Shown here: positions 46,650-55,625 of the stretch, piece after piece | How positions within the stretch are numbered: position 1 is the first letter of the stretch | Layout: each line of letters begins with the position of its first letter | Source: Guillardia theta CCMP2712 | Lineage: Eukaryota; Protista; Cryptophyta | DNA length: 64,000 nt | Assembly: GCF_000315625.1 (NCBI RefSeq) | Contig: NW_005434671.1 | Span: 248,001 to 312,000 of the forward strand | Direction: 5' to 3' | Notes under the pieces: model-generated | Seen by the model: only the letters and a program-made list of their open reading frames with translations | The model's database searches: none | What the model was told of the DNA's origin: nothing | Position numbers and translations under genes: made by a program

Positions 46650-48316
46650 ATGACGAGCACGGAGTCATTTTTCGACGGTCCTTTCGAAGTCGAGAGCGAC
46701 AAGGTCAACTACACTGATGAGGCTATCTTTGCCACCTACTCCTACCAGACCACAATGGTAGAGAACCGAAATGGGAAGACGGTTGTCATGCCTCAGACAC
46801 AAAACTTCGAATTCAAGACGGATCGCCAGGTCCCAAGGGTGGGAGCAATGTTTGTCGGATGGGGAGGAAACAACGGCACCACGGTCACGGCAAGTATAAT
46901 TGCAAACCGCCATGGCATCGTATGGAACAAGAAGGAAGGAGAAGTCCGCTCGAACTACTTCGGCTCTCTCACTCAGTCCTCGACCATCCGGATCGGCAAC
47001 AACGAGTGCGGAGACAACGTTTACATTCCCTTCAAGAACCTTCTGCCTATGGTCAATCCCAACGATCTGGTCATTGGAGGTTGGGACATCTGCAGCACCC
47101 CCCTTGGAGACGCCATGAAGAACGCCAAGGTTCTTGACTATGACCTGCAGCGCCAGGTTTACGACGAGATGCAAAAGCTGAGACCACTTCCGTCGGTTTA
47201 CTTCCCAGACTTTATTGCCGCAAACCAGGCAGGGAGAGCTACCAATGTCCTGAAGGGAAGCAAGCAAGAGCAGCTTGACCAGATCAGGAAGGATATTCGT
47301 GATTTCAAGTCTGCCAACAATTTGGACAAAGTGATTGTCCTGTGGACTGCCAATACAGAGAGATTTGCTGAGGTGAGGCTTTGAATGTTAGGTTTCATTT
47401 ATCCTCTGACGCGCAATCAAGATCCAAACAGGCGTGAACGACACTGCAGAGAACCTCCTTGCTGCAGTTCAGCGTGGCGAGTCAGAAATCTCTCCTTCCA
47501 CCGTCTTCGCGATTGCCAGTATCCTGGAAGGCGCTTCCTACATCAATGGCTCTCCTCAGAACACCTTTGTAAGTGTCCCTAGACTGCTGTACTTCGCCCT
47601 TCCTGACGTGAACTTGTCTCAAGGTTCCTGGAGTCCTCGAGCTTGCTGAGGAGAAGCAGGTGTTCATCGGCGGAGATGACTTCAAGTCCGGACAGACCAA
47701 GGTCAAGTCTGTCCTTGTCGATTTCTTGATCAGCGCTGGCATCAAGGTGAAATCCATCGTCTCTTACAATCATCTCGGAAACAACGATGGGAGAAACTTG
47801 TCTCAACCCGAGATGTTCCGCTCCAAGGAAATCTCCAAGTCCAATGTGGTCGACGACATGGTTGCCTCAAACAACATTTTGTACGAACCAGGAGAGCACC
47901 CCGATCACGTTGTGGTCATCAAGTACGTCCCCAACGTTGGAGATAGCAAGCGTGCGATGGACGAGTATGTTTCCGAGATCTTCATGGGAGGAACCAACAC
48001 CATTGTGATGCACAACACGTGCGAAGACTCGTTGCTTGCCGCTCCTATCATCATTGACCTTGTTCTCTTGTGCGAGTTATTCGAGAGAGTACAGCTCAAG
48101 CGGGAGGGAGCGAAGGAATATGAACGCTTCCATCCGGTCTTGTCGGTGCTTAGCTTCCTTCTGAAGGCTCCTTTGGTCCCACCTGGAACTCCAGTTGTCA
48201 ACGCGCTCTTCACCCAGAGGCAATGCATGGTGAACATCATGAGGGCTTGTTTGGGTCTTGCTCCCGAGAACAATATGCTCCTTGAGCACAAACTTAACCG
48301 CAACTGCAGCATGTAG
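46650..48316 (+). CDS. INO1: myo-inositol-1-phosphate synthase
   Basis: [56 protein letters not shown]; introns ~47373-47431 and ~47569-47623. Confidence 0.98.
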
Positions 48317-48513: not shown

Positions 48514-51060
48514 TTACACCATCACGATGGATTTGGTCATATCCTGTTAAGTCGTCAACATCATCATTTACAACAAACAGCATCTGACCTGAGGGTTGCT
48601 GAGCCCGTGGTTCGTGAACGTCTTGGAAGCCGAGGATTCACCGATCTCAGTCAGCCTGTAGAGTGACAGCAAACTTCATGGATAGGAAACGCGCAAGCAA
48701 AGTCATCACCTGCCAACGAAGGGCCCATCCTCGTCCTCCGGGAACGCGAAGAAGTCGGCGATGAGTCTTGGGGCCTGTTACGAGGAGGAAGCGTCAAAAG
48801 AACGGGAGACGATTTATGCCCTGACCTGCTCCAAGGAGGAGATGTAGAAGTCTGGATCGAGAACCTACGCTCCAGTCACTTTGTTCTCCTGGCATTGCCT
48901 CCTCACACCGTGTCTCGTGCCCTTGTCACGACTGTGTCGGCTTCTGGTATCGGTCCGAGCTGTGAGACATGTCAAAGTTGGACGGATGCACCCAAGTGAA
49001 GGACCTTGGAGACGTCCATTTCAGGATTCTTCATCTTGTATTCTGCTGCTGTCTGTGTATATTCTGCACGAAAGACGGTTCTGTTCTGGACGTCAAGGCG
49101 ACAGCCGGGATGTCGTCGAGGAAACAAAAATTACCCCGGGGCAACGCAATAGTCCTTGAGGTAGGTCATGAGATAAGGTGGTTTCGCTCCTGATGAGAGA
49201 GGTCAGAGACTTGGAGAGGACTCAAAGGGGACATCGTAGGCAAGTGCTTCTGACGGAGATGGATGTTGAAAACATCAGGTAGATCAGAGTTGAGCCGTGA
49301 TGCGTCCAGCAAGTATCAAAGGATCAAAGGGGAGGAGATAGGAAATATCAAGGGGAGGAAATGGGTTGAACTCATTGCGGATGGAAGCAGAACGAGTAGA
49401 TGCAAAGGGTGCATGGGACCTGTGTTGATGGTCTTGGAGAGATCGAGTTGACCGTCCTCCAGTTTCACAGAGCCGATGAAGAGATCAAGATCGCTCGGCT
49501 TCTGCTGTACCAGTCACATTGCATGCCATTGACTTTCGCTTCCAACCTCAGGGCAGCGTCTCGGTGGATTGTACTTGCGCGGACAAGGGATAGGCTTTCT
49601 GAGCATCCGGTCTGACAGTGGCAGCATGTATCAGCATCACACGATAGTTGTTCCAAGGCAGCGACACCTGGAACGACGCTCGAACCGTCAATGCGCACTT
49701 CCTTGGAGTAGTGAGAGCTCCCGGGGATCTGCTTGGACAAGCCGACGTCGCTGACGATGCTAAGCTTCGTTTCTACATTCCCAGGATTGAAGACGGCACT
49801 GAAGAACCTTCCTTGCCAAGTCAACCAACAGGTCGTACCGCAGAGGAGACCGTACCTTGCATCCGCATCATCGTCCAGAGTCTGCAAGTGCATCTGCGCC
49901 TGCATCTTGTTCCACACCTTCAACCTGAACGACTCGACGGAGTCCGCTATCCTGCACTTGATAGGAACCTTTTCTCCATGCAGATCATTGACAAACACCG
50001 TGATGGTCTGCAGGAGATGGAGTGATTCAGCCTCCACAGTGCTTTCCCATCATATGGCTCTGAGTTTACCTCGTAAGGGGTGGGCTGTGGCCTCTGACCA
50101 GGCCAGCTCTTCTTGTTCAAGGTGAACCGATCAGTCTTGTACGGCCCGAAATCGATAGGAGAGTTCTCTTCCTGGAAGCAACATACCTCAGATAGGGTTG
50201 GGGAACAGTAACAGATCACAAGCAATTCCAGATACAAACTTATTTTCCCGTCCTCTCCTCTCCCACCAACCAAATTTCCCAGGCCAAGTTCCCGACCACA
50301 CACTGAATAACAATCTTTGACCCACCTGCTTGACCCCGAAGCAAGGCAGGACTTCATCCACCTGCCGCTCCTTCTCCCAGGAGTCGCTGGTTCCTCTCTC
50401 GGTCTTCTCGTACTCTACGGATCCGAGCAGCCATGACAGACTCTGAACAGGCTCATAATCCACCGCCGGTGGCCCCGGTGCATTGCGAACCATCCCAAGC
50501 GTCGTCCGGGACCCTCGTCCCCGCACATACATTGTCTTGGACGGGCCCGCACCGATAAAGAACACAGCTCGCCTCATCAGAGACAGGTTTGACCGTTGAC
50601 CAAAATGAAACCGGCAGACAGACCACAACAATCCGAAGAGGTGCAAAATGAGTAGAGCAACTTCGCAACGTTTGGCATTGTTGCCCGTCAAAACTAGAAA
50701 GGGTCCCCAAACTTTAGACCGCATCGTTTGGGATTGTTGCGCTTTCGACATGCCGTGCGTCGGTTCGGAAACGGCAGGAGCAATGGAGGTCCGTCGGGGT
50801 ATTTCTTGAGGTAATGCTGGAGGTAGTCCTTGGTTGCTGTCCTCCTCCTCTCGGCAATGCCGACGGGCATCTCCTCAATCACGTTACTGTTGGTCCGACG
50901 GGGCAACAATTCCAATCGTTGTGATTCATCAAATCCTGGATTGAGCCTCCTGTAAAGCTTTTCAAGATTTACGAGGGGATTTGAAGATTGCTCCCCAGAA
51001 CCGTGAACTTCCGTGTCAAGTCCGACACAACAATCCCAGGCGTTGCTTCTTTGCAAGAAA
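48514..51060 (-). CDS. Hypothetical many-exon protein with a ubiquitin-like domain
   Basis: ITVFVNDLHGEKVPIKCRIADSVESFRLKVWNK..WLTWQG resembles a ubiquitin fold; chain of short GT-AG-bounded exons (QKPSDLDLFIGSVKLEDG; APRLIADFFAFPEDEDG; DMTKSIVMV*). 5' end uncertain. Confidence 0.55.
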
Positions 51061-51557
51061 AAGATTTCGAGAAGAAATTTGAAATTGAAGATACGCTGAT
51101 GTTTGAAATTGAAGATACGCTGATGTTATACCGACATGTGCACAACAATCCCAATCGTCCTGTCTTTAACATAGATAAACTCACATCGAATCATATTGTT
51201 GCTCCTCGTTACCCTGTAATTTAAACGATTTTAATCCAAATTTTGAGAGAATTTGGCTTCTCGTAGACAAAAACATTTCGATTCGGATTGTTGCCCTTCG
51301 GTTCGTGGTATTCCAGAGCGTCTGTTCCTGGTTGAGCAGGGCAACAATACGAAACGACGGGAATCAATTCCAGCACCGCGACGATCTGGATTGTTGCTCT
51401 ACTTCATTTGTATCTTGCAAGCCTGCGTCGATTCGGATTATAAAATACCGGCGTCGATTGGGATTATAAAATACCGCGTCGATTGGGATTGTTGCCCTCG
51501 CTTCATTTGTATCCTGACGAGGTCAAGCTGAAATCGAAACGATTCGCATTGTTGCTC
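50624..51557. repeat. Array of 12 dispersed 18-bp motifs (CGWTTSGRATTGTTGCYC) in both orientations
   Basis: Forward at 50669, 50725, 51187, 51279, 51382, 51480, 51540; reverse at 50624, 50901, 51025, 51140, 51339; truncated at 51429 and 51455. Confidence 0.85.
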
Positions 51558-52052: not shown

Positions 52053-55000
52053 ATGAGCTCATTTCAGTCTCGTTCTAGCGTCGTTCCAAGTTCTTCGGCG
52101 GAAACTGACGCGAGGAAAGAAAGACGAAGTCTGACTCCATTCTGGGACACGAATGTGAGAGAAAAAGTGAAGGAGAATCAGGCGTCTACCTCTGTTGTGG
52201 GACATACAAATCAACCGGCTGCTACCTTCTCCTTCGAGAGCCGGAGGCAGAACCTGAAGCCGAACAAGAACTCTGACTTGTTTGCAGCGTCTTCGAAAGA
52301 GAAGAACGAGGAGGCCTTGAAGGGGTGGAAGCCATGGAGAAAGGCGTTGAACAAGTACAGCCATGAGGGCAAAGACAAGAAGAAGATCTCTCAGGCCTTG
52401 TCAAAGATCGCTGCTGAGACTCTGATCCAGTCAAACCCTCTGTTGGAGGCCTCGCAAGACAGTCTCACCCCCAATTATCAAGTTCGCGACCTCTCCTCGC
52501 TCTCTCTCTCTGACCTGTGCATCTTGAATGTGGCATTTCAAGCCGCCGACGTGGATAACAGTGGTGCTCTCGACATGCAGGAGTTCATCAACGCCTTCCT
52601 TCCGTTGCTGGCCGCGGGAGCCGGAGACCTTCACCTGATGTTCATGAGGATAGACGCGGACTGCGATGGCACCATAACTTGGGAGGAGTTTCTTTCTTTC
52701 ATCGTCATGCAGGATGACGGAGCGATTCAACTCGAAACTGAAAGCTCGAGGAAGCTTTTTCAATATCCGAGCATCGCAGACAATGCTCTGCAGATCGTGG
52801 GGCACAAGGAAGTGGCAGCTGGTTTCATTTGCTTCGACGAGGTTGATAAGTACTTGTCCTACAGCAGGAAAGGAGACCTGCTCGTCTGGTGGCCAGACGC
52901 CATTGATGGGGTGAAGATCCGCAGCCCGAAAGCTTACCAAACTGACTTGTCTTTCATCGTCGGGCTCATTCATGTTGCCAAATTTGGGCATTCTGATAGA
53001 TTTGCCGTGTGTGCTGCAAACAAGCGCCTCCTCTTCCTCGACTTGATCCGAGACAGCTTCAAGGTTGTGGGGCAGCTCGTTCTCGACATCTCACCCCTCT
53101 CCATCTGCATGATTGCCATCAAGGGCGATACAGAAAGCTCGAATGAGAGCATGATCGCCTTCGGAGACGACTTCGGAAGCATCCATCTGTACGATGCCGA
53201 CAAGCTGGTGCACATAGCCAGCCGACATGAGCTCACTGCCAACGGCTTGTCCAAGGAGATGTGGACTGCTAGGGCCGCGTACATCAGCTCATGGCAGGCG
53301 CATGACAAGACCGCCTGGGTGACCAAGTTGGACTATCACGACGAGACGCGCATGCTGCTGTCGTCAGCGTCGGATGGGCAGCTTGTGGTCAGCGATGTCA
53401 TTCGCCGAACGATCAAGCACGATGGCTTCAGACACAGAGGGGAGGTAGCGGATTTCTTGTGGATGCCCAAGTGGCAGCTGCTGGCTTCATGTGGTATTGA
53501 GAGGTACATCAGCATCTGGCAGATTCCCATCAAAAACCCCGCGTACAAGCTAGAAGGGCACCAGGCGTCTGTTCACAAGTTGGCGTATGGAGGTGGGCAA
53601 CTCATCAGCCTAGACACGAGCAAGACAATCATCATATGGGACCTCAGAGATATGGAGCCCATCCAACGCCTGGAAGCAGCCAAAGTCCACCAGGAGTTTC
53701 CAGTGTCGAGCATCATCTTCGACGCTCGCAGGAACACGTTGCTGAGCATCTCTCGAAAGATTCTTCCATGGCACATATCAGAGCGCAAGGTTCCCAACGG
53801 GCACGCTCTGCCCATCTCCTGCTGCGTTTACAACCCCACCTTTGAGATCCTCGTCAGCACGGACGAGGCCTCGGTAGTGCGAGTGTGGAACGTCAACACA
53901 GGAAAGGCGATCATCCGTTACGAGAACGCGCACACCAACGCCAAGTCGGAGCCAGTCAAGATAACGGCAGCCACCTTCGACCAGACCAATCGGCGGCTCA
54001 TCACAGGAGCGCATGATGGGAGCATCAAGGTGTGGAACTTCAGCACGGGCCAGCACCTGAGAGAGCTGGAGGGGTTTGGGAGCGGAGAGGTCACTTCGAT
54101 CCAGAACTTCAGCATCACTCCCTACGACTACATCGTTGCAACAGGGTGGAACCACAAGGTCTCGTTCTGGGAGGAGTCAGGGAGCAGCACGGCAGAGAGG
54201 CAGGGCAGCAAGAAGGCAGTGACGCATCACTTCGAGGGTCACGGGGAGGACATTCTGTGCATGGTCTGCCACAAGGAGGCCAACCTCATCGTCACCTCCT
54301 CCTACGACGGTGACATCATCATATGGAACCACGAGCTCGGCATCCCCCGAGCTCACCTGGTCCTGCCCGGCATCCGCATGATGACGCAAGAGCAGAAGCC
54401 GATAGAGGCCATGGTGATCATCTGCTGCCCGAGCCAGGTGGAGCAGGAAGACTTGATTCTGCTGGTAACAGCCGGAGGAGATGGGGTCGTGAGGTTCTGG
54501 AACGTGACGGGGGCGCCTGAGCTGCTGCTGGAGTACACCATGAAGGACTCGAGGGACGCAGGTTTGTCCTCGTTGATCTCGTGCGAGAGGAGCAAGGTTA
54601 TGATCCTCACTGACAACCATGGCTTCGTCTACGTCTTCGACATCCAGGCTACCATGAAGAGCGCGGGGCAGGCGACGGACATGTCAGACATTCGGCTGTG
54701 TCGTCCAGTGCAGAGGAGCAAGTGGCGAGCGCATCTTCAAAGCATCACGAGCGTCTGCTACGTCAACTCAAGGAGAATCGTCATCACGGGATCGCGCGAC
54801 TGCACCATCTGCGTGTGGACGATCCATGGGCACAGACTGGGGATCCTCGGTGAACCTTCAGGATGGGAGCTGACGGCCGACATGTTCCGAGACTTCAGGC
54901 TGGATGAAGCAGCCTTCGATGCCTCGCTGCCGGAGGAAGAGGAGGAGAGTGGGCAGCGGACGGAGAGTCCCAGCCCTGTCGCAGAGTCGGGCAAAGACAA

Positions 55001-55625
55001 AGTTCAGCCAGAGAACGACTCGTCGAGCCGGATCCCCATCTTCACCCTGCAAGCTCAGATGACGGGGAAGAGGCTGGCAGTGACAGACCCAACACAGGAA
55101 GAGGGCAAGAAGACGATGGCTGACGAGTCGAAGCAGCAGGCAACTCAGAACGCTTTCTTCATGACTCAGGACTTGGATATCAGCACAATATCACGGGACG
55201 GTGAGCTCGAGGAGGACAACAAGGACACGGAGAGCATCAGCGACAGTTCGTCGTCCGAGCTCGACCTCCTCTCCTTTGCCGATGCTGGTCCTCTACGTCT
55301 GCAGGAGATGGGAGGGAAGCAGGAGGTTTCCATCAACTACGCGCTCAAGGACGAAGTCGACTCGATCCTCCAGCGGGCCAAGGAGAAGCGAGAGAACCCG
55401 GAGAAGTACTTCGAAGCTTCCTCCCTGGAGATCTCAGCGTACCAGAAGATGATAGTGAGCGACCTCCATGAGCTCTCCCTGCCCGCGTCTGTGTCAAAGA
55501 AGATGATGAAGGGCAAGAGGCTGGTCAAGGCAGCCTTGTCGCACGGCAAGGATCAGACGCCTTTCTCTGACGTTGACTCCGAGTTCGGATCGGAATCTGC
55601 GTTCGAGAGGGACAGAGCGCTATGA
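52053..55625 (+). CDS. EF-hand + WD40 repeat protein (WDR49/WDR64-like, probably ciliary), single exon
   Basis: EF-hands DVDNSGALDMQE and DADCDGTITWEE followed by many WD repeats (ITGAHDGSIKVWN, GHGEDILCM, ITGSRDCTICVW); acidic tail. Confidence 0.9.
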   Translation: MSSFQSRSSVVPSSSAETDARKERRSLTPFWDTNVREKVKENQASTSVVGHTNQPAATFSFESRRQNLKPNKNSDLFAASSKEKNEEALKGWKPWRKALNKYSHEGKDKKKISQALSKIAAETLIQSNPLLEASQDSLTPNYQVRDLSSLSLSDLCILNVAFQAADVDNSGALDMQEFINAFLPLLAAGAGDLHLMFMRIDADCDGTITWEEFLSFIVMQDDGAIQLETESSRKLFQYPSIADNALQIVGHKEVAAGFICFDEVDKYLSYSRKGDLLVWWPDAIDGVKIRSPKAYQTDLSFIVGLIHVAKFGHSDRFAVCAANKRLLFLDLIRDSFKVVGQLVLDISPLSICMIAIKGDTESSNESMIAFGDDFGSIHLYDADKLVHIASRHELTANGLSKEMWTARAAYISSWQAHDKTAWVTKLDYHDETRMLLSSASDGQLVVSDVIRRTIKHDGFRHRGEVADFLWMPKWQLLASCGIERYISIWQIPIKNPAYKLEGHQASVHKLAYGGGQLISLDTSKTIIIWDLRDMEPIQRLEAAKVHQEFPVSSIIFDARRNTLLSISRKILPWHISERKVPNGHALPISCCVYNPTFEILVSTDEASVVRVWNVNTGKAIIRYENAHTNAKSEPVKITAATFDQTNRRLITGAHDGSIKVWNFSTGQHLRELEGFGSGEVTSIQNFSITPYDYIVATGWNHKVSFWEESGSSTAERQGSKKAVTHHFEGHGEDILCMVCHKEANLIVTSSYDGDIIIWNHELGIPRAHLVLPGIRMMTQEQKPIEAMVIICCPSQVEQEDLILLVTAGGDGVVRFWNVTGAPELLLEYTMKDSRDAGLSSLISCERSKVMILTDNHGFVYVFDIQATMKSAGQATDMSDIRLCRPVQRSKWRAHLQSITSVCYVNSRRIVITGSRDCTICVWTIHGHRLGILGEPSGWELTADMFRDFRLDEAAFDASLPEEEEESGQRTESPSPVAESGKDKVQPENDSSSRIPIFTLQAQMTGKRLAVTDPTQEEGKKTMADESKQQATQNAFFMTQDLDISTISRDGELEEDNKDTESISDSSSSELDLLSFADAGPLRLQEMGGKQEVSINYALKDEVDSILQRAKEKRENPEKYFEASSLEISAYQKMIVSDLHELSLPASVSKKMMKGKRLVKAALSHGKDQTPFSDVDSEFGSESAFERDRAL

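Follow-up and report, generated by a model that had tools for sequence, protein, structure and literature searches.

The 64-kb stretch analysed here (positions 248001-312000 of scaffold C3 of the Guillardia theta assembly, which counts 87 Mb in 669 scaffolds; hereafter the window, whose own coordinates are used below unless a scaffold is named) contains an array of a long DNA motif, of which 12 full copies lie between positions 50625 and 51555. The species is borne out by a database protein of Guillardia theta CCMP2712, GUITHDRAFT_74258, to which the assembly is 100% identical over 333 residues. The array fills the middle of a 2.0-kb gap between two open reading frames (ORFs) arranged head to head, and its GC content is ordinary. 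The left neighbour, on the minus strand (49468-50037), has its ATG at 50037, 588 bp from the array, and passes our crude codon score; over roughly 45 residues from its start it resembles the N-terminal half of ubiquitin (E ~1e-8 to polyubiquitin chains), and the remainder is without match. The right neighbour, on the plus strand (52053-55625), starts with an ATG 497 bp away from the array and encodes a protein of 1190 amino acids with EF-hand and WD40 domains, which among natural proteins of solved structure most resembles WDR64 (PDB 9fqr). Gene orientations were deduced here and below from ORFs and a home-made codon-usage score, the gene models being unspliced. An intronless gene as large as this one is unusual in G. 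theta, and because WDR64 is an axonemal protein, the gene may encode a flagellar protein. Further to the left, at 46650-48316 on the plus strand, two long ORFs look by eye like a myo-inositol-1-phosphate synthase split by an intron.

An initial annotation, made from the letters of this stretch only, had described twelve copies of a motif in both orientations, with an invariant ATTGTTG, a CG 8 nt upstream in nearly all copies, irregular spacing and mostly unique spacers. All these features were recovered by counting. The pattern CGN6ATTGTTG (CGNNNNNNATTGTTG) has 11 exact matches in the window, all within 50669-51554 and none elsewhere, whereas dinucleotide shuffles of the window contain 0.42 on average and never more than 2. 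Scanning with a relaxed 20-mer consensus derived from the aligned copies (GCAWCGNTTSRNATTGTTGC, with a cut-off of at least 14 of 18 informative positions) gave 12 sites in 50625-51555 and one chance match elsewhere. Seven of the sites are on the plus strand and five on the minus strand, in the order - + + - - - + + - + + +, with start-to-start distances of 40-179 bp. Copies 2 and 3 (50665-50684 and 50721-50740, both +) match all 18 informative positions, while 17 are matched by copies 4 (50903-50922, -), 11 (51476-51495, +) and 12 (51536-51555, +), 16 by copies 5 (51027-51046, -), 7 (51183-51202, +) and 9 (51341-51360, -), 15 by copies 1 (50625-50644, -), 8 (51275-51294, +) and 10 (51378-51397, +), and 14 by copy 6 (51142-51161, -). 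The eleven copies listed previously were correctly placed and the twelfth, omitted from that list, is copy 7. ATTGTTG is unchanged in 12/12 copies and the upstream CG is present in 11/12, being absent only from copy 1. As for the location, the array does lie in the divergent intergenic region before the EF-hand/WD40 gene, but no sign was found of the 5' exons and introns that had been supposed to run through it. The ORFs overlapping the array have no Pfam hit and fail the crude codon-usage score, for which reasons a coding repeat was rejected.

The spacers of the window array are otherwise unique, since the only tandem structures found in them are two local duplications. The first is a 26-bp tandem repeat of 2.6 copies (51425-51490, +), in which units 1 and 2 contain the motif's left 15 nt and then ATAAAATACC, which resembles TATAAAA, and unit 3 runs into the full copy 11; the two truncated copies thus present ATTATAA in place of ATTGTTG. 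The second, revealed by repeat finding, is a perfect 24-bp tandem duplication without motif, located within a spacer (51078-51125, +). Growth of the array by local duplication is shown by the 26-bp repeat, which also creates TATAAAA words at 51437-51443 and 51463-51469, some 590-610 bp upstream of the EF-hand/WD40 ATG, which may be due to chance. A tandem satellite or minisatellite was rejected for the window, where Tandem Repeats Finder reported only the 24-bp and 26-bp duplications and where spacing (40-179 bp) is irregular and orientation mixed. The spacers do not align as those of a decayed satellite would; these unique spacers, and the lack of any common sequence between arrays once the motif is masked, led us to reject that class too. 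Some other G. theta arrays are partly tandem, but their units differ from array to array.

In the genome as a whole, the motif is rare and strongly clustered. Four split searches with CGNTTNNNATTGTTG returned 164 matches, compared with 18 for the reversed control, and the loci fetched contain 143 consensus sites grouped in 15 arrays, which span 0.2-2.2 kb and comprise 2-26 copies apiece; matches are not uniformly frequent along the genome. These arrays are located on scaffolds C1 (466k), C3 (298k, which is the window array, 366k, 377k and 924k), C16 (198k), C18 (304k), C42 (513k), C51 (398-400k, with 26-27 copies all in one orientation), C67 (230-232k, 233-234.5k, 290k and 375k), C82 (377k) and C115 (84-86k, with 23 copies), so that the arrays are themselves grouped on C3 and C67. 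Counted from the four hit lists, strict single sites number about 50 against a background of 18, leaving about 30 singles above background. Considering all arrays, neighbouring copies are at least 28 bp apart, the commonest spacing is 50-70 bp, and no helical phasing of the copies was detected (Rayleigh p=0.33). Tandem-duplication periods of 58, 74, 108, 136, 137 and 147 bp are found within arrays. Two of the arrays have a particular organization: the one at C3:376283-377508 contains 16 strictly alternating copies (+-+-), built on a unit of about 147 bp with an inverted pair of sites 43-53 bp apart, and in the C51 array the 27 one-orientation copies are separated by 18-160 bp of mutually unrelated sequence.

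The anatomy of the motif was established from position counts over 148 sites taken from all G. theta array loci, 136 of which remained after removing near-duplicate flanks. In these 136 sites the information content is limited to about 30 bp, from about position -5 to +25, and the columns further out are random. An A-rich run at -5 to -1 is followed by the core [G/A]CA[A/T]CG-N-TT-[C/G][G/A]-N-ATTGTTGC and by a weak tail (not-A, S, G, N, C, A, A), which gives a recognised unit 26-30 bp long. The core is an imperfect palindrome, GCAAC-N10-GTTGC, and is steadily asymmetric, with CG on the left and TG on the right. If paired, it would form a stem of 5-6 bp, in which position 1 is G or A facing a constant C at position 20 and position 4 is A or T facing a constant T at position 17; the position counts of the 136 sites, read without a formal pair-count test, give no sign of compensatory change. 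Because the stem varies on one side only, we take the motif for a site in the DNA itself rather than an RNA hairpin. An RNA gene or CRISPR-like array was likewise rejected, given the irregular spacing, the mixed orientation and the Rfam result: no match at the gathering score in 130 kb of array loci, with only a chance hit to a CRISPR direct repeat (E=0.95) in the window.

A related idea is that each copy drives a short transcript, as does the Ruby motif upstream of the 21U-RNAs of C. elegans. In favour of such small-RNA mini-promoters, the motif is long and occurs in either orientation, the sequence next to each copy is unique and the loci are clustered. We nevertheless hold this to be the remotest of the explanations considered, since no second conserved element or initiator stands at a fixed distance from the motif, the spacers go down to 18-40 bp, Rfam gives no match and the genome has only about 170 copies.

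Comparison with known protein-binding sites produced partial likenesses. The tRNA B-box bound by TFIIIC (GGTTCGANTCC, with invariant A58 and C61) was rejected: the motif reads G-N-TT-S-R-N-A-TT-G, with one extra base before the invariant A, TTG in half of the copies and TT where CC is required. The ATTGTT core of SOX/MATA HMG-box proteins, which had been brought up for this locus, is indeed an invariant substring of the motif, but it covers 6 bp of a unit of 26-30 bp, which has four to five times the length of an HMG-box site and comprises an invariant CG 8 nt upstream; membership in this family was rejected. Sequence-specific HMG boxes are not known outside opisthokonts, and the sole HMG-box protein encountered, which is encoded on a metagenome contig, belongs to the non-specific HMGB type. 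The X-box of RFX factors (GTTGCC-N1-3-GGCAAC) uses the same half-site words, GTTGC and GCAAC; some G. theta copies extend as GTTGC-N3-GCAAA, which is X-box-like, and the right neighbour in the window resembles an axonemal protein. In the X-box, however, the half-sites (GTTRCY/RGYAAC) are inverted and 1-3 bp apart, whereas those of the Guillardia core are everted, GCAAC preceding GTTGC at 10 bp, and the X-box-like tail is weak, so that this candidate was rejected as well. RFX factors are known only from unikonts. In addition, the motif cannot be that of a ciliary regulon because it occupies only about 15 loci.

What the arrays have in common is the motif and nothing else. Blastn between motif-masked arrays finds no match at E<=1e-3, the remaining similarity being that of duplications inside arrays, and single copies with a perfect motif share only the motif and a few flanking bases. 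Within arrays, seven sets of locally duplicated units, from six arrays, were used to compare variability: 17/140 motif columns vary as against 506/708 flank columns (Fisher p=2e-40), a contrast that is inflated, since the sites had been picked for resembling the motif. Even so, an effect of this size, together with spacers that have lost all similarity from one array to another, speaks for selection on the motif. The spacers between the 27 copies of the C51 array are unique, so that this array is an old one in which the motif was held throughout.

The motif is also found outside G. theta, in uncultured organisms that are probably aquatic protists. Metagenomes were scanned for two motif copies 25-55 bp apart, with five motif positions left free in the pattern. 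All five free positions match in 27/120 of the metagenome matches listed and in 1/120 of the bacterial or archaeal ones (p=5e-8); among viral contigs none of 10 matches has all five and no array was seen. The positive metagenome contigs range in GC from 0.28 to 0.63 and their proteins are of eukaryotic type (Ephrin_rec_like, LRR_6, ankyrin, MORN, U-box, Snf7). Most of their arrays repeat regularly in tandem every 53-75 bp, with spacers that are contig-specific and a 20-mer that is constant. On some contigs the tail is of the G. theta type (GTTGC and then GTGGCAAAC, for instance), and others have a CGCGAA box. On compact contigs, the arrays lie 40-370 bp from ORF starts.

Two groups of contigs allowed the position of an array to be compared between orthologous loci. 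L061, L085 and L104, which come from three different samples and represent three related organisms, are syntenic, with 43-88% amino-acid identity over about a dozen ORF families. Each carries an array at the corresponding intergenic position, a short way upstream of an ATG that is itself conserved. The number of copies is two in L061, three full ones plus degenerate ones in L085, and five or six in L104; the spacers of L085 and L104 are still alike and the more distant L061 keeps only the motif and the CGCGAA box. Similarly, L094 and L160 have an array directly 5' of orthologous DUF2828 genes whose products are 72% identical. The closest named relative of an array-adjoining metagenome DUF2828 protein is a G. 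theta protein (48% identity), which hints that the DUF2828-bearing contig, and that contig only, comes from a cryptophyte-like organism. Around the G. theta DUF2828 genes themselves, no motif site was found in the loci of about 4 kb fetched, which may not span the whole upstream region, and two orphan proteins from other array contigs have no match in G. theta.

Several of the metagenome contigs deserve separate mention. The lone bacterial exception, L264 (RFOM01000094.1, labelled 'MAG: Proteobacteria bacterium WB4_1_1462', MAG standing for metagenome-assembled genome), is a contig of 10.6 kb with three full copies at its end and large ankyrin ORFs, among them one of 582 aa with ankyrin repeats; its DNA is probably eukaryotic and its place in a bacterial MAG a binning error. 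On L090, L052, L111 and L130, giant proteins with Ephrin_rec_like repeats adjoin the arrays, some of them with F5/8 type C, PAN or NCD3G domains, and on L090 a 2204-aa ORF of this kind has an array on each side. This recurrence may simply reflect the abundance of Ephrin_rec_like genes in that organism. Finally, L045 (ORXF01000198.1), a 46-kb marine contig with a GC of 0.28, has a four-copy array among orphan ORFs only (no Pfam hit in the six tested) and may belong to a protist or a large virus.

Because masked arrays and single copies are alike only in the motif, and because neither terminal inverted repeats nor an Rfam family were found, a satellite, a transposon body and an RNA gene are all disfavoured. 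The transposon deserves a closer look, as the end of a mobile element was among the first proposals for this locus. The arrays would then be relics of subterminal transposase-binding repeats, or clustered ends of miniature inverted-repeat transposable elements (MITEs), possibly domesticated. A long motif in mixed orientation is typical of CACTA- and Ac-type subterminal regions, and one metagenome contig has two oppositely oriented arrays around two LRR genes. Yet no inverted repeat longer than the motif flanks either the window array or that metagenome pair, the flanks of arrays and singles are unrelated, 30 flanking ORFs contain no transposase or other recurrent domain, and no full-length element with arrays at both ends and a transposase was seen among the array loci fetched. 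The 26 copies in one orientation are also unlike element ends. The class of DNA transposon ends and MITEs was accordingly dropped for lack of long inverted repeats, shared flanks and transposase domains, and we consider a transposon relic very improbable.

A different multi-copy element lies near two of the arrays. It is at least 4 kb long (L010:1-2976, that is C3:360938-364975, and L014:5193-8886 on C18), with a fixed 3' end and variable 5' truncation, and contains one intronless ORF of 898-972 aa without Pfam hit. At least 60 genome matches were found, many of them 98-100% identical and many broken by stops, and the whole has the look of a transposon of a kind not yet described, either still active or active until recently. 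It stands 34 bp from the C18 array and about 950 bp from the C3:366k array; at its other copies the 3' flanks are unrelated, which speaks against the arrays being transposon relics.

The motif could instead be kept because it promotes its own duplication, as the site of a recombinase or nuclease or as a recombination hotspot; the arrays would then be a eukaryotic counterpart of the bacterial repetitive extragenic palindromes (REPs) and bacterial interspersed mosaic elements (BIMEs), or a minisatellite family with a common core. REPs and BIMEs, too, are short imperfect intergenic palindromes which occur singly, in inverted pairs and in clusters, in both orientations. Almost all copies of the Guillardia motif are arrayed, with clear growth by tandem duplication, they occur in both orientations and, in the C3:376k array, in strictly alternating inverted pairs as in BIMEs; the copy number varies at orthologous loci, the arrays are intergenic without clear 5' bias, and they are grouped on C3 and C67. 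REPs, however, are bacterial, depend on REP-associated tyrosine transposases (RAYTs) and have well-paired stems, whereas the Guillardia stem of 5-6 bp shows no covariation in the position counts and no such enzyme is found nearby. A self-propagating repeat also fits poorly with array positions kept between the same genes at 43-88% protein identity, with the lack of target-site duplications, terminal inverted repeats and any associated recombinase or transposase ORF, and with the unique spacers of the largest one-orientation array (27 copies), which mark it as old with its motif held. We regard this explanation as unlikely, but as one to be kept in mind.

Another possibility is that many bound copies nucleate a chromosomal structure, the arrays being boundaries or insulators, replication origins, pairing or anchoring sites, or components of a regional centromere. 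The motif occurs practically only in arrays and at few loci (about 15 in 87 Mb), and the neighbouring genes have no common function. Many of the G. theta arrays also stand in unusually long stretches without confident ORFs: the median gap without confident coding ORFs is 4.7 kb at G. theta arrays vs 0.8 kb elsewhere, in a crude comparison biased by locus length. The transposon-like element which abuts one array and lies 950 bp from another is what permissive, gene-poor spots would accommodate. On the other hand, the loci are too few for replication origins. One cluster per chromosome, which had been put forward as the mark of a centromere, is contradicted by the four arrays on C3, of which one is about 550 kb away, and by the four on C67, although an assembly in scaffolds provides only a weak test of this point. 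The window array itself lies 500-600 bp from two gene starts in gene-dense DNA of ordinary GC, and the metagenome arrays are 40-370 bp from ORF starts. A purely architectural role of the arrays seems to us rather improbable.

Of the readings proposed at the outset, that of a protein-binding platform in general fits best, the motif being constrained, kept in other organisms and, in one case, kept at an orthologous position. More precisely, the window array may well be a homotypic cluster of sites under selection, to which one sequence-specific protein would bind so as to act on the divergent genes on either side or to form a boundary, a reading to which we give about an even chance. The short motif is clustered in non-coding DNA far beyond chance, it is more constrained than the sequence between copies (with some ascertainment bias in that measure), and its intergenic position is kept among orthologous loci in L061/L085/L104 and in L094/L160, a comparison made between metagenome contigs only. 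We infer here that a protein binds the motif, which protein this would be and that its binding affects transcription. The length, the quasi-palindromic character and the asymmetry of the motif suggest that each copy would be occupied by a dimer or by a reader with several domains, for instance a poly-zinc-finger protein. Arrays would arise and change copy number by local tandem duplication, and selection would then keep the motif while the spacers decay. The resulting high local occupancy would activate one or both flanking genes, in the manner of an upstream activating or enhancer-like sequence, or insulate them from each other.

Several well-studied systems share parts of this design. The Su(Hw) array of the Drosophila gypsy insulator packs about a dozen degenerate, long and asymmetric motifs into a few hundred bp, with short spacers that are unrelated to one another; it is read by a multi-zinc-finger protein and works only with several copies. 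It belongs to a retrotransposon and all its copies are direct, whereas the Guillardia array has no transposon body, mixed orientation and an unrelated motif; the likeness is a functional analogy only. The homologous regions (hrs) of baculoviruses are dispersed loci, several per genome, in which an imperfect palindrome some 30 bp long, set within repeat units, is present 2-8 times or more; they are bound by a dimeric factor and serve as enhancers and origins. In contrast to the Guillardia arrays, which stand in a cellular nuclear genome with spacers unrelated between loci, they are viral and their units are homologous between loci. Finally, the upstream activating sequence of yeast GAL1-GAL10 and other homotypic clusters of divergent promoters also repeat a partly palindromic site in the middle of a head-to-head intergenic region, but the GAL case involves 4 sites of 17 bp in about 120 bp, and the window array 12 sites of 26-30 bp over 930 bp of a motif hardly ever found single.

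A stricter version of the protein-binding reading, in which the arrays would be the promoter clusters of a regulon, is weakly supported. In G. theta, scored ORFs stand within about 1 kb to the left and to the right of three arrays (the window, C3:924k and C67:290k), and all three lie between divergent ORFs. Yet the flanking ORFs that face an array by their 5' end are 14:9 in G. theta and 20:15 in the metagenome contigs, neither ratio being significant, and because of this lack of significant 5'-side bias a strict promoter role is not supported. Other observations weigh in the same direction against a selected cluster of regulatory sites. Nearly all sites are in arrays and few are single, which is unusual for an ordinary transcription-factor regulon. 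The neighbouring genes have no common function, being mostly orphans with two unrelated WD40 proteins and an aminotransferase; an all-against-all blastp of the G. theta flanking ORFs found no common family except the ORF of the multi-copy element and two distantly similar WD40 proteins, so that the idea of a common neighbouring gene family was abandoned. In addition, the long ORF-poor stretches around many G. theta arrays suit an architectural role as well as an enhancer role.

Going one step further, these arrays could represent a new cis-element system of cryptophyte-like protists: an asymmetric quasi-palindrome of 26-30 bp used almost only in arrays, with a lineage-specific multi-domain reader, conserved in organisms with GC contents of 0.28-0.63 and keeping its place between orthologous genes while the number of copies turns over. 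We put this forward tentatively, as a possibility that we think would sooner fail than hold. Literature searches with the motif strings returned primers only, no mention of this element came up in those devoted to repeats and regulation in G. theta, and a paper on polinton-like viruses of cryptophytes (PMC12220804) does not mention such a motif.

Cryptophytes are a major algal group derived from secondary endosymbiosis, and the control of their nuclear genes is little known. A long and specific DNA word, arrayed, apparently selected and common to uncultured relatives, offers in this respect an unusually clean entry point, and the 15 or so arrays constitute a small set of loci in which co-regulation or boundary function could be studied. 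Should the arrays prove instead to be self-propagating, they would provide a rare eukaryotic parallel to the bacterial REP elements. If they do form a new cis-element system, no element of the enhancer or insulator type would have been defined in cryptophyte-like protists before them, and they would give a direct handle on the binding protein. The element could also become a building block for expression tools.

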